Assembly (NCBI GenBank): GCA_002269645.1
Contig: NIVC01000618.1
Span: forward strand, 1-64,000
Length of the DNA: 64,000 bases
DNA from: Macrostomum lignano
Lineage: Eukaryota
Reading direction: 5' to 3'
Part shown: positions 29,753-37,226 of the stretch, piece by piece
Layout: each line of letters starts with the position of its first letter
How positions within the stretch are numbered: the stretch's first letter is position 1
Program-made: the position numbers and the translations under genes
Notes under the pieces: model-generated
Told to the model about the DNA's origin: nothing
What the model saw: only the letters and a program-made list of their open reading frames with translations
Database searches by the model: none

Positions 29753-32700
29753 TCAATCGCGACTTAAATTAGCCACGAGCACGCCGACCAGCATCGCCAC
29801 GAGAATCGAACCCCGGCTCGGCAGCAGAGTCGAACCCGCGCCCTCTCGGCATTTAAGCATTCGATAGCTTAAAAAGGTAAAAAAAGCAGCGGCGGAAATA
29901 ATTCATTTAGGCACGTGTATCTAATTAATACTACTAACAGTAGACTTCGATCGATAAAAGGTTTAATTTATCACTCACTAGTTGGTCTCGTTGCGCTGAG
30001 CTCGTTCGTACTGACTCGAGACCGTGCCGCCAGCGAAGAACCAAATGCTGATGTCGTTGTAGGGATATTCGAACCCCTGCCTGCACTCGCATTTGTAGTT
30101 CTCCAATTGGAATTTATTTTGAATGACCGGCACGCACTGTGGGACAATTTTGCACTCTAGACTACTTATCATTGTTAACAGTAGAGCAGTGCGAGCATGA
30201 ATGTTATAATTAAACAAAGGAGCAAAAAATGCCTTATTAATGGGGCTGTCGAGTTGCGGAGCGCCGCTTTTGACACAAAACAGAACCGTCGCTCTCTCCC
30301 TGTGCACGTGTCACCTTGAGATCGAATTTTGCGACGATTCCATCAGTGCCAAGAGCGACTGTTTATCTCCGGAAAAGTTTGGCAAAAGGTAGGCCAACAG
30401 ATACGCTTGGTTAAAATGCTTCTACCTACTGTGGCCTCTGTAACAGTCTTTAAAATGTAACCTACGTAGCTGCTCTCAAAATGACACGGCGCCGAGTTCT
30501 TGAAGTAATTGGCCTCGTAGAAATTCCCCGGACACTGGTTGATGTCCAGCTTGTCCAGGCGGACAGTCACGGCGGTGACGCCAAGGAACTGCAGGCTGCG
30601 CTGCTCCGAGTAGCCGAAGAAGGGCGCCGCCACGGTGATCACCCAGTCGTTTACGTGCCGGCTGTTCGGGTCCCTGTTCCTGTTGCAGTCGAAGTACGGC
30701 TTGGACCAGTACATATCGGCAAATCTGGGCGCTCGATAGTACAGCGGGTACCGCTGGAACGGCTTGGACCCGGTGCCATTCAAATCCGTGCGAACGTACG
30801 GCTTGTTAACGAAAGTCTCCAAGCCGTAGGTGTTGGACGCCCAGCGCTGCTTGAGGATGCGGAACCAGTCCCTCTCGAAGTAGGCTCGCTCCAGCGGCCA
30901 GCCCGCGGCGTCCTCTGCCACGAAGCTCAGCTGGCGCTGTTTCTGGTCTCCGGTGTCGTCGCTGGCCAGCTTGAATGCGGTCGGGCCGAAGTATTCGATG
31001 CGGCGCTTGAGCAGCGGGTCCCAGAATGCCTCCCGGTCGTAATAGATGCCGGCTGACCGAATCCACCCGTCTGACATGACGTTGGCGAAGGCCTCGCCAA
31101 ACAGCTGGTCGCGGTTCAGGTGCTTGTCGCTATAGAACGGACCGTACACCTCGTCGGGGTTCACGTTCTGCGAGAACGCGCTCAGGAAGTGGGCGAGGCG
31201 GAGAGCACTGCGGGCCTGCACCTGCAGTGGGGAATCGGGGCGGTGGGGAGCTCAGGGCGCTGCAGGCCAACCAGACACATCCAATGGCCACCCGCGTTCA
31301 GTCCAACCCATCCAACACATCATGTCCAACCCAACACATCCAGTCCAACCCACCGATTCCCACTCCAAAGCCACCAATCCCCACCCCAAACCCCACCAAT
31401 CCCCACTCCAAAGCCACCAATCCCCACCCCAAACCCCACCAATCCCCACCCCAAACCCCACCAATCCCCACCCAAGCCCACCAATCCCCACCAATCCCCA
31501 CCCCAAACCCCACCAATCCCCACCCCAAGCCCACCAATCCCCACCCCAAAGCCACCAATCCCCACCCCAAAGCCACCAATCCCCACCCCAAAGCCACCAA
31601 TCCCCACCCCAAATCCACCAATCCCCACCCCAAAGCCACCAATCCCCACCCCAAAGCCACCAATCCCCACCCCAAACCCCACCAATCCCCACCCCAAACC
31701 CCACCCCAAAGCCACCAATCCCCACCCCAAACCCCACCAATCCCCACTCCAAAGCCACCAATCCCCACTCCAACCCACCTGGAAGCTGGTGTCGGCTCCG
31801 TACCCAGCCTCGCCAGGCAGCTCAAGCTGTTGCGGAGTTTTAGCCGCGCAATTCTCTGGCGTAACGGAGGCCGTGAAGCTGATCAGCTGGGTGGCAGCCT
31901 TGAACCTGTCGGCATCGAAGGTGGCCAGCCGGCCCAGGTAGTGTACATTCTGGCCGCCCATGTCGGCAGGCGTGGAGATGCTCCTGGCTGCCCTGCTCAG
32001 CAGCCCCTTCACCAGGCTGCCCAGTCCATAGCTCCCCGCCTTCTGCGCCCGCTTCAGCTCGCGGTCTCGCCTGTCGTGCTCGGCAACCTTGCTGCGCAGC
32101 TCTGCCATCGCGCTGGCATTGTACAGGTGCATGAGGTGCACCAGCTCCTTGGTCTCGTCTAGCGATCGTTTCCTCCTCCGCCGCCGCTTGCTATTCGGCG
32201 TGATTCCGCGCTCCGTTAGGCGTTGCAGTTTCCATTCGACCGGGATGCACTCGAACTGGTCGGCCTCGGCCTCGGACGCCTGCTCGATGTCGCGGCCGAG
32301 GAACGGGCCGTTCTGCCAGTAGGGGTAACGGTAGCCAGGCCGGCAGTGGCACACGTAGCCGCCCCGCTGGTAGCCGTGGCCCGGCAGCGGCTCGCACTGC
32401 ATTGTCAATTATCAGTTTTTATTGCGCATTTTTTGACAAAAAGCGTTTTTTTTGTTTGCATTGCTACTTAGTTGTAAGTAGGATAAAACGAGTAGTGCGA
32501 ACTTGCGAATTTCATTGTTAAAAATGCTGTAGACAGTCACGGAAGGCAGATGGCTCAGAAATTTTTTTGCGTTTTTTCTGAACTAGCGTGTTAACAGATA
32601 TATTCTGAGTTTTAGAAATAACAACTAACCAGTATAGATATGGAAGCACAATGGAAACTTGTATAGTCAATATTAAACAAAACTGAAACCATATTTAAAA

Positions 32701-35700: not shown

Positions 35701-37226
35701 AGACAGACAGACACAGACAAACAGACAGACACAGACACAGACAGACAGACAGACAGACACAGACAGAATGACACAGACAGACAGACACAGACAGACAGAC
35801 ACAGACAGACAGGCAGACAGGCTGCGCAAAGCACTCACTGAGGCCGGCGCAGTTTAGTCTCAATGCTGTATCGAACCATGAAGTCAATAACGGGAGCCAC
35901 CGCGCTCACAATCCACTTGTTGGAGCGGCCGCAGTCGAAATAGGGCCGGGTAAAGTACACGGGCTGGTAGGGCTCCGATATGCCTGGCGACGGCGGCCCA
36001 AAGAACTGCCGTTTGATATTGGGCATTCGCTCCATCTCGCCCACCCTGGTGGCGTTATAAATCAGATAGTCGTACTGGTGCTTGGCGCGGTAGTCGGTGC
36101 GCAGGTCCGGGATGAAATCGATTTGGTTGGGCACGTCGCGGACTACCATGGAGTTGAGCGGGTGCCAAGAGGCCGTATAGTTGTGCCCCGGGCCGGAGCC
36201 CAGATCGTCAACCTGGGGGCGGGTGGTTTGATTTTCGAAATGTGTGAATAATAGCACAGATTACTGATAGTAGCGTAGTAGATAGTAAATATAGTAAATA
36301 GTCAGGTTCCTCAGAGAACTTAAACTTAAACTGTTGAACTTAAAAATAGTCACGTTTGGAGTGGGTGTGACGCCCCGACAGCGGGGGCAGGGCCCGCTCT
36401 CAGCCCGACTGGTGTCGCCTGCTCGGCTTGTTTAGTTGCAGTCTACTTTAGCCTAGCTTAGAAGCCTAGTGTACATAAGTACACTCCCAACCTGGAACCG
36501 TAAGGGCCTGACCAATGGCTGAGGCGCCTTATTACTTATCAACTGAACTGAACTTAGAAATAGTCACGTGACATCTACACAGCCAATCACCGATCTACGA
36601 TAGGCCAACTGCGCCCAAATCCGATCCCAGCTGCTCACCCTAATAGTGTTATTAGTGGGCTCCCTCAGCCAGTTGACTGGATCTTGAAAGTCGTCGACTA
36701 GAAAAGCCTTCGGGCCGAACAGCGGCAGGGTGTTGTTGAACAGCAGGATGGTGGGGTACCAATTCGCGTACTGCGTGTGCGTGTCGAAAAGGACGCCGGA
36801 GCCGTTCATCAGGCCGACGCCGGATGAGACATCGGCCGAGGCGCCCATGTAGTAGTACAGCATGCCCGGCAACATGGGAAAGTCGGTCACCTGGGACTCG
36901 TTGAGGCGCTGCAGAATGTAAGAGTAGAAATAGGCACGGTTGAGCGCCATGTTATGCATGTGGATGAGGTTGGTCCGGTTGGGGAAGATCACAATCTGCG
37001 GCAGCACGTTGAACTTCGGTCGCTGACCAACGGAATTGGCTGGCAGACGGAGTGACTCGGAGCTCATCTCTTTGCAGTTGAACTCGTTCACCGTGTCCAT
37101 CTTCTCCATGACTGCGTCAAAGTTATCTCGGGTCATCCAACGGTAGGGGCCAATTGCGATGCCTCCAGTCCCGAACAGGACAAAAATGGCGCCCAGCGTT
37201 ACTATGGCAACGCGAGCAAGTCCCAT
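29753..37226 (-). CDS. Secreted/GPI-like protein with two GPR158/GPR179-type Cache+EGF ectodomain modules and no 7TM, 911 aa; complement join(29753..29867,29979..30136,30466..31221,31779..32396,34041..34167,35839..36212,36639..37226)
   Basis: All six introns are GT-AG with matching phases (0,2,0,0,0,2) and the exons total 2736 nt. Signal peptide [24 protein letters not shown]. Module 1: [21 protein letters not shown]...IDFDPC...[22 protein letters not shown]. Module 2: WSKPYFDC...[11 protein letters not shown]...LDINQC...CVPV...[10 protein letters not shown]-terminus [29 protein letters not shown]. Confidence 0.88.
31335..31775. repeat. About 21-bp C-rich minisatellite (CCACCAATCCCCACCCCAAAG)n filling intron 4
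   Basis: G-rich on the sense (minus) strand; begins at the donor GTGGGT (31778). Confidence 0.93.
33372..34016. repeat. 21-bp minisatellite (ACACATTCACACAGAAGAGAG)n in intron 3
   Basis: Period 21; source of the spurious TFTQKRD ORF. Confidence 0.95.
34660..35035. repeat. Polypurine (GA/GGA-rich) low-complexity tract
   Basis: Almost purely purine on the + strand. Confidence 0.85.
35556..35820. repeat. (AGAC)n microsatellite
   Basis: Direct inspection; starts about 20 nt into intron 2 on the minus strand. Confidence 0.95.

Follow-up and report, generated by a model that had tools for sequence, protein, structure and literature searches.

The first 64 kb of contig NIVC01000618.1 of the Macrostomum lignano genome assembly GCA_002269645.1 (this whole stretch is called the window below) contain, on the minus strand between positions 37226 and 29753, a gene of seven exons that encodes a protein of 911 amino acids built from two complete ectodomains of the kind found in the G-protein-coupled receptors (GPCRs) GPR158 and GPR179. 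The protein lacks the seven-transmembrane (7TM) bundle, the 4-Cys loop and the cytoplasmic tail of those receptors, and it ends in what is, judged from its composition, most likely a signal for the attachment of a glycosylphosphatidylinositol (GPI) anchor. The reading preferred here is that the protein is probably a GPI-anchored, non-signalling binding subunit, that is, a co-receptor or decoy, made of two GPR158/179-type ectodomains. It is not an isolated oddity: it is one of a large family already present in the databases, it falls within the wider GPR158_179_EC domain family, and its architecture is, as far as searched, undescribed.

The way in which the GPR158/179 ectodomain works is debated, and both the sensing of small molecules and the trans-synaptic binding of matrix or heparan sulfate have been considered. 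To our knowledge, no animal GPCRs carry a Cache ectodomain other than the class C orphan receptors GPR158 (the metabotropic glycine receptor, mGlyR) and GPR179. In the protein described here the same ectodomain is free-standing, duplicated and predicted to be tethered to lipid.

Two receptor-type modules and the missing receptor core

Each half of the protein is a complete GPR158/179-type ectodomain, with N-terminal helices, a Cache/PAS core and an EGF-like part with three disulfides, and the assignment is made because Pfam, a sequence search of the PDB, BLASTP comparison with protostome GPCRs, and AlphaFold modelling followed by Foldseek agree on it. The first-pass annotation, which was made from the letters of the DNA and its open reading frames (ORFs), had claimed two homologous modules and had taken them for Cache and EGF modules of the GPR158 type, and both claims are borne out. 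Compared directly by BLASTP, the two halves are homologous (23% identity over 353 amino acids, E=6e-15), and the 16 cysteines of the protein fall eight to each half at matching alignment positions. The Pfam domain GPR158_179_EC is found in both halves (E=1.6e-41 for the whole protein), and MCP-like_PDC_1 additionally matches module 2, as the C-terminal half is called here. A profile of the family that was searched against PDB sequences retrieves GPR158 (7ewl, 7she and 7ewp) with an E-value of about 5e-19 and GPR179 (8d1b and 8irj) with 3e-15. In BLASTP comparisons with P0229, a GPR158-type GPCR of Tubulanus that is named 'metabotropic glycine receptor-like', module 1 matches at 1e-21 and module 2 at 1.5e-27 over 340 amino acids, which is almost the entire ectodomain.

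The full-length AlphaFold model, computed from a 113-sequence alignment, has a mean predicted local distance difference test (pLDDT) score of 85.2 and a predicted template-modelling (pTM) score of 0.84, and low confidence is confined to the signal peptide and to the linker at residues 430-519. The best Foldseek matches of this model in the PDB are to GPR179 (8irj_A, 2.7e-11; 8d1b_A, 2.9e-9, with a template-modelling (TM) score of 0.59 normalised to the 259-residue target), and bacterial and plant Cache/CHASE sensors rank after GPR179. When module 1 is modelled alone, the top matches are GPR179 (8.6e-9 and 4.8e-8) and GPR158 (7ewp_B, 3.5e-6; 7ewl_B, 9.5e-5), followed by bacterial Cache sensors.

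Both modules are collinear with the entire ectodomain of the GPCRs. The match begins at the N-terminal 'NC' helix, takes in the PYFDC Cache strand and the D-I-[DN]-x-C motif and extends as far as the sixth EGF cysteine, and each module has the complete set of six EGF-like cysteines in alignment. D336, which is 99% conserved, and D795 align with D314 of GPR158, one of the Ca2+-site-like residues in the EGF A loop of that receptor (PMC8611064). The GPCRs differ from the protein in the number of ectodomains, since they have a single one where two are present per chain here, and in what follows each of them. In the GPCRs the sixth EGF cysteine leads into a 4-Cys segment of the form C-x2-C-x2-C-x5-C (FPCALGCDECVDDSPC in P0229 and LPCREGCPFCADDSPC in human GPR158), with the first transmembrane helix coming next, whereas neither module here has the 4-Cys D loop, and the sixth cysteine is followed by the linker in module 1 and by C-R-[IL]-[AGS]-G-A-[SA] in module 2. 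The D loop of GPR158, which has two disulfides, contacts extracellular loop 2 of the 7TM domain (PMC8611064).

The absence of a 7TM domain, which had also been claimed at first pass, holds for the window, for the annotated gene and for the homologues. A hydropathy scan finds hydrophobic segments at the N- and C-termini only in about 90 of the 120 homologues listed, and a 7TM-like hydrophobic series in none of these approximately 120 sequences. The 911-residue protein has no 7tm match in Pfam. In tblastn searches of the 64-kb window the 7TM regions of four GPR158-type GPCRs match nothing at E<1, and the full sequences of the same four receptors match only the ectodomain exons. The matches of the 120 listed homologues are confined to the seven exons in tblastn except in the case of P0081 (UniRef A0A1I8FIM8, 'C2H2-type domain-containing protein'), an older M. 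lignano model in which part of a paralogue is joined to repeat-rich downstream sequence. The extra part of P0081 corresponds to the minisatellite-rich positions 24790-28040 of the window and has no 7tm Pfam match; P0081 is a chimeric annotation, and it is the sole 'evidence' for anything past the tail. Hidden 7TM exons were considered and rejected, as the tblastn searches with the 120 homologues and with the four GPCR-type relatives located none in the window. P0003, a paralogue that is 61% identical and comes from a transcript-like contig of 3027 nt, is a single uninterrupted ORF which ends after the same type of tail. Downstream, the first annotated gene that follows encodes an EF-hand protein and lies on the opposite strand.

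The cytoplasmic region which recruits RGS7 and G-beta-5 is absent as well, since the protein stops 3-5 residues past the hydrophobic tail. Because the 7TM and cytoplasmic regions are replaced by a GPI-type signal, the protein is unable to couple to RGS7/G-beta-5 or to G proteins alone, and, as tests for both regions found neither, it does not belong to the GPR158/179 GPCR family. The protostome GPCRs that correspond to that family include Drosophila Smog, the ligand of which is the secreted protein Fog, and the 'metabotropic glycine receptor-like' proteins.

Family, conserved ending and variable linker

At E<=1e-3 a word-indexed search gives 269 homologues, the best of which outside Macrostomum match near E=1e-220, and a representative search gives 596; similarity on this scale is far beyond chance. 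The protein can be aligned from end to end with 112 homologues and has all the invariant columns of that alignment, and it shares the traits of the family, which are a signal peptide, two modules of eight cysteines, a variable linker, and KCR.[AG]G[AS] followed by a hydrophobic tail. Named members come from Platyhelminthes, Annelida, Mollusca, Brachiopoda, Nemertea, Orthonectida and Acanthocephala, from Arthropoda (insects including Diptera and fleas, Collembola, crustaceans and a horseshoe crab), and from Tardigrada, Nematomorpha and Priapulida. The family covers more than ten phyla; a match in a bdelloid rotifer is divergent and lacks the conserved motifs of the ending. In the homologue listings, the sampling of which is not exhaustive, no member from a deuterostome, cnidarian or nematode was seen.

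Two sequences stand somewhat apart. P0151, which is divergent and 1010 amino acids long, was considered as a non-protostome member and rejected as such, its nearest named relatives being those of tardigrades; these animals have a standard member of about 830-930 amino acids plus a divergent longer paralogue of 1010-1473 amino acids (P0294, P0295, P0151). P0171 (MetaClust, 874 amino acids) is a GPR158-type GPCR in which about 190 ectodomain residues occur twice, almost identically, before the 7TM domain. This duplication looks like an artefact of assembly or prediction and not like a true GPCR with a tandem ectodomain; if it were real, P0171 would be the 7TM-bearing counterpart of the tandem GPR158_179_EC family.

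Conservation is alike in the two modules, with top-residue frequencies of 0.60 and 0.56. The N-glycosylation sequons N83, N141 and N164 are invariant, and the most conserved segment is a helix at about residues 82-107 (N83-Q106), in which N83, R84, N92, A94 and R97 are invariant. Insect orthologues from several orders are 67-82% identical to the flea sequence. The family is ancient and under strong purifying selection across Protostomia.

The names that the sources give to members of the family are 'uncharacterized protein', 'hypothetical' and 'GPR158/179 extracellular domain-containing protein', and the databases also contain the misnomers 'G-protein coupled receptor 158' and 'Fras1 related extracellular matrix protein'. 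No named or characterised orthologue was found, every source name being generic, automatic or a misnomer, and literature searches found no paper on a tandem GPR158-type ectodomain architecture. The name and literature searches therefore agree with the first-pass annotation, in which no characterised protein of this architecture was known.

The protein ends in C-R-x-[AGS]-G-A-[SA], a spacer, a hydrophobic run and a few further residues, as do 94 of the 120 listed homologues. Among the homologues the tail after the last cysteine is 24-36 amino acids long (median 28), the residues at C+3 to C+6 are mostly A/G/A/S, and the uncharged hydrophobic run has a median of 14 amino acids and is followed by a median of 3 further residues; the tail is kept in composition and not in sequence. 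A rule-based scan of the M. lignano protein reads its tail as G-A-G-S, then TLLPSRGS, a 12-residue hydrophobic run (NL) and SRD. The pattern '..RY..LKCR.[AG]G[AS]' with a hydrophobic tail is common to flatworms, annelids, molluscs, a brachiopod, insects, a tardigrade and a horseshoe crab. A stretch of small residues, a spacer and a hydrophobic tail form the layout of GPI-attachment signals, and such a tail is short for a helix that spans the bilayer.

Both ends of the chain had been proposed at first pass, and both have been upheld. The predicted signal peptide corresponds to an N-terminal hydrophobic segment which the hydropathy scan finds in this protein and in most homologues. The terminal exon at 29867-29753 is real, its peptide aligning with the conserved ending across phyla. 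The alternative that this 115-nt exon is a chance ORF in a short interspersed nuclear element (SINE) derived from a transfer RNA, in DNA with two GGTTCGA-like boxes, was rejected because the peptide is conserved across phyla, because the DNA is unrepeated in the window (no further copy of the exon 7 DNA was found within it), and because the lone difference from the sister locus described below is synonymous.

The linker between the modules is the least conserved region, with a mean top-residue frequency of 0.15 and 62% gaps, and in the AlphaFold model pLDDT is below 50 at residues 430-462 and 484-519. The pattern R-x-[KR]-R stands right after module 1 in nearly all spiralian members, most of which add a second site just before module 2, and the presence of two flanking sites suggests that a connecting peptide may be excised in spiralians. 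In the M. lignano protein the linker is shortened and has one strong site, the polybasic KRRRRRKRS, which occupies positions 32163-32189 as the first reading had placed it, corresponds to residues 433-441 and lies in the predicted disordered linker. The R-x-[KR]-R that a furin-type enzyme requires is present there as RRKR/S, in a predicted disordered segment of a secretory-type protein, while the nearest downstream dibasic site, RELKR/A, is without a P4 arginine. Judged from these motifs, furin-like cleavage in M. lignano is plausible. No inter-chain disulfide would be expected, because each module has an even number of cysteines (8).

Gene model, second locus and surroundings

The gene model, rebuilt from the translations and the junctions, has a coding sequence of 2736 nt which specifies 911 amino acids and a stop codon, with GT/AG at every boundary and compatible phases. 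It reproduces exactly the complete, phase-consistent ORF of 911 codons first proposed, and its translation is identical in 911 of 911 residues to the annotated protein P0001, 'hypothetical protein BOX15_Mlig029453g2 [Macrostomum lignano]'. Its features, all on the minus strand, are as follows.

37226-36639, minus strand: exon 1, with the start codon at 37226, the signal peptide, the N-terminal helices of module 1 and the first part of its Cache core
37226-37149, minus strand: predicted signal peptide, residues 1-26, within exon 1
36212-35839, minus strand: exon 2, Cache core of module 1 including the RPYFDC motif, with C290 invariant
34167-34041, minus strand: exon 3, 127 nt, last Cache strand of module 1 and start of its EGF-like part (IDFDPC...C)
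32396-31779, minus strand: exon 4, rest of the EGF-like part of module 1, disordered linker and N-terminal helices of module 2
32189-32163, minus strand: KRRRRRKRS, residues 433-441, polybasic, candidate furin/proprotein-convertase site R-R-K-R/S
31221-30466, minus strand: exon 5, Cache core of module 2 (KPYFDC) and start of its EGF-like part (LDINQC)
30136-29979, minus strand: exon 6, EGF-like part of module 2, with the donor ACCAACTA followed by gtgagt, phase 2
29867-29753, minus strand: exon 7, terminal, with the last EGF cysteine C880, then the GPI-attachment-like signal and the stop codon
29842-29756, minus strand: GPI-attachment-like signal, residues 883-911, in exon 7

Exon 1 is matched by 118 homologues in tblastn and exon 3 by 108; the latter exon was located by frame scanning with its junctions checked, and it is required for phase consistency. 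An in-frame ATG lies 12 codons 5' of the annotated start (window 37262-37227, minus strand). The annotated start appears to suit a signal peptide better than the upstream ATG does, and it agrees with the database protein.

A second locus in the same assembly (L002, NIVC01000825.1:83923-111190) encodes an identical protein of 911 amino acids. The coding sequences of the two loci differ at 12 nucleotides, and all 12 differences, one of which is in the terminal exon, are synonymous, with 0 non-synonymous. The neighbours of L002 match those of the locus in the window, including the downstream EF-hand gene. M. lignano has undergone a recent genome duplication, with which the copy at L002 is consistent. 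Two more divergent paralogues in M. lignano are represented by P0002/P0003, which are about 62% identical and have a longer linker and two convertase sites, and the fragments P0024 and P0081.

Tandem arrays crowd the introns of the gene (31347-31779, 33357-34017, 34865-35038 and 35555-35820). Intron 4 consists mostly of a C-rich minisatellite of 21/42 bp, which gives rise to long spurious ORFs on both strands, and it is the most diverged segment between the two M. lignano loci (90.5% identity). Further intron arrays are formed by a 21-bp unit repeated 31.5 times, by an AG-rich array and by (ACAG)69.

Elsewhere in the window, the downstream EF-hand ORF at 27356-27961 (plus strand) has three or four EF-hands, is calmodulin/troponin-C-like (Pfam EF-hand_7, E=3e-27) and corresponds to an annotated gene for 163 amino acids. 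A long exon at 9537-10601 (plus strand) encodes a metallophosphoesterase of the purple-acid-phosphatase type (Pfam Metallophos 3e-21, Metallophos_C 4e-19). Fibronectin type III exons lie at 55849-57195 and 62415-63014 (both minus strand; fn3 3e-28 and 1.6e-6), and the two stretches probably belong to one large gene for a cell-surface protein; the ORF at 55849-57195 continues into a minisatellite reading (LVNLVGI)n. More minisatellite arrays, seen in the ORF translations as long ORFs in several frames and on both strands, occupy about 14900-25400, 43365-44312, 45364-46016 and 54179-55120. About one third of the region from 14 to 26 kb is apparently tandem repeat, and readings based on ORFs are unreliable in these minisatellite stretches.

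Proposed mode of action and its rivals

If the protein is a GPI-anchored binding subunit, it would be an N-glycosylated product of the secretory pathway displayed at the cell surface, with the anchor attached in the G-A-G-S stretch of small residues directly after C880. Modules 1 and 2 would pack as an intramolecular pseudo-dimer, in the way that the ectodomains of GPR158/179 form a Cache-mediated homodimer; the relative placement of the modules in the model is confident, because pTM is 0.84 despite about 90 disordered residues (~10% of the chain). The helix at 82-107 appears, judged by its position in the module, to be the counterpart of one of the dimer-interface helices of GPR158 and GPR179, in both of which two helices form the ectodomain dimer interface (PMC8611064, PMC11437087). 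In M. lignano a furin-like convertase would cut the disordered linker after KRRRRRKR, and module 1 would then stay non-covalently on the GPI-anchored module 2. In spiralians the tether may be severed or excised once the protein has folded, in the manner of a connecting peptide, which would leave two chains associated non-covalently. Because it is without a 7TM domain, the protein can act only as a binding subunit, and it would serve in ligand binding or adhesion and signal only through another membrane protein. It could bind a small molecule in the Cache pocket, or its partner could be a protein or heparan sulfate; GPR158 reportedly interacts with heparan-sulfate proteoglycans. GPR158 binds glycine and taurine in its Cache pocket (PMC12834959), and GPR179 is unresponsive to glycine and binds pikachurin through its ectodomain (PMC11437087).

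A number of observations weigh against this account, and they concern the modules, the linker and the tail. Module 1 is modelled less confidently when taken alone (pLDDT 73), which could reflect either the absence of its contacts with module 2 or a shallower alignment (25 sequences vs 113). The Foldseek TM-scores are moderate (0.5-0.6, target-normalised) and the root-mean-square deviations are 7-9 A, and for this reason the Foldseek support is at the level of the fold and is not a precise superposition. The glycine-pocket residues of GPR158 were not mappable on the modules, since the hidden Markov model alignments to the PDB chains begin at 198 or 261 and stop short of S172, the pocket residue that the literature gives for GPR158. 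In the linker, the second site of most spiralian relatives is absent here, and R-x-[KR]-R was found in 0 of the insect sequences examined, Diptera included, in which the linker is short; among the non-insect arthropod sequences examined it occurs only in a horseshoe-crab member. Because insects are without the linker site and sites in other arthropods are rare, cleavage is not a core feature of the family and cannot be required for its basic function. In the tail, finally, the hydrophobic run of this protein is short (12-14 amino acids), and a few homologues have a run of 20-25 amino acids that is compatible with a transmembrane anchor.

In its proposed working logic the protein resembles an auxiliary subunit that is derived from a receptor and anchored by lipid, as in the case of alpha2-delta or GFR-alpha. 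Alpha2-delta is a Cache-containing auxiliary subunit or co-receptor which is cut into two disulfide-linked chains and GPI-anchored. With alpha2-delta and CACHD1 the protein shares an extracellular Cache without a signalling domain of its own, and the proposed working logic is similar. The Foldseek matches to these proteins are weak, however (E 0.02-0.8, TM-scores of at most 0.07), the 911-residue protein has no Pfam match to the VWA domain that is a feature of alpha2-delta, and its cysteine count predicts no inter-chain disulfide, in contrast to the linked chains of alpha2-delta. A relationship with alpha2-delta was therefore rejected, the matches being weak and local and the common ground being the generic Cache fold. 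GFR-alpha co-receptors, T-cadherin and the TRAIL decoy receptor DcR1 are GPI-anchored, receptor-derived proteins that act as co-receptors or decoys; the likeness to them would be one of function only, by analogy, in that a receptor-type ectodomain is held by lipid, and their folds are unrelated. The Cache/CHASE sensors of bacteria and plants (McpU, TlpA, PctD, soHK1S-Z6, AHK4) form the second tier of Foldseek matches, with about 250-300 aligned columns at 9-13% identity; unlike the protein described here they lack an EGF-like part, and in every case a transmembrane transducer is fused to them.

Of the other explanations that can be given for the protein, two concern the way in which it is held at the membrane, and each of these is rather improbable. 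The C-terminal segment could be a single-pass transmembrane anchor with a cytoplasmic stub of 0-6 residues, which would make the protein a type I membrane protein without GPI; the tail is indeed hydrophobic and C-terminal, and in some homologues the uncharged run is 20-25 residues long and is followed by basic RR, K or RRNQC. This is opposed by the median uncharged run of only 14 residues, by the conserved [AGS]-G-A-[SA] at a fixed distance before the run and right after the last structural cysteine, and by the conservation of the tail in composition only. It would be similarly surprising if the main form were soluble, with convertase cleavage, hydrolysis of the anchor or both freeing module 1 or the whole ectodomain as a diffusible ligand trap or signalling factor. 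The strong polybasic site in the disordered linker would permit such release, and the even cysteine count of each module means that module 1 would not be held covalently after cleavage. Against it, insects without the linker motif keep both modules highly conserved, which argues that the modules work together, the high pTM suggests packed modules, and the membrane-tethering tail is kept in 94 of the 120 listed homologues.

That the protein is an adhesion or matrix-organising molecule only, with degenerate Cache pockets and contacts to proteins or heparan sulfate like those of GPR179 with pikachurin and of GPR158 with glypican, is a stronger contender, though still a doubtful one. The ectodomain of GPR179 binds pikachurin while the receptor does not respond to glycine (PMC11437087), the GPR158-like GPCR Smog of Drosophila is a receptor in morphogenesis (PMC6778782), and the three invariant sequons and the most conserved residues lie on helices and not in an identified pocket; set against these points is the Cache fold, which is kept with high confidence in the models of both modules. 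This alternative concerns the identity of the ligand and not the architecture. The suggestion that the model represents a GPR158-type GPCR that has been truncated or mis-annotated, and whose 7TM exons lie elsewhere, is almost certainly wrong. It could draw on the label 'G-protein coupled receptor 158' that several databases attach to members and on the continuation of the older UniRef model P0081 into downstream sequence, and it is countered by the lack of any 7tm Pfam match in that downstream part, by homologues from more than ten phyla with terminal hydrophobic segments only (about 90 of the 120 listed) and none with a 7TM-like series, by the ending and stop codon conserved in 94 of the 120, by transcript-like contigs that hold a complete ORF with its stop, and by 64 kb without 7TM similarity, in which the gene that comes next codes for an EF-hand protein on the other strand.

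For the GPI-anchored binding subunit that is preferred here, the very strong constraint on the sequence (67-82% identity among insects; 12 of 12 differences between the M. lignano loci synonymous) implies that the ectodomain has an important function without a 7TM domain of its own. Members of the family occur in genetically tractable animals, among them M. lignano and Diptera closely related to Drosophila, so that this function is directly testable, and the protein could reveal a new co-receptor or decoy principle for ligand-binding domains of the class C type. For structural work and ligand screening, it provides the ectodomain dimer in a natural single-chain form. A more far-reaching and distinctly tentative interpretation is that this is an ancient protostome family in which a GPI-anchored, single-chain copy of the class C ectodomain dimer detects an amino acid, a secreted ligand or a matrix ligand independently of any 7TM domain, as a sensor or co-receptor, and possibly modulates the GPR158-type (Smog-like) GPCRs of the animals that carry it. 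If this were true, the family would represent a branch of GPR158-type signalling that has so far gone unrecognised and that vertebrates lack.

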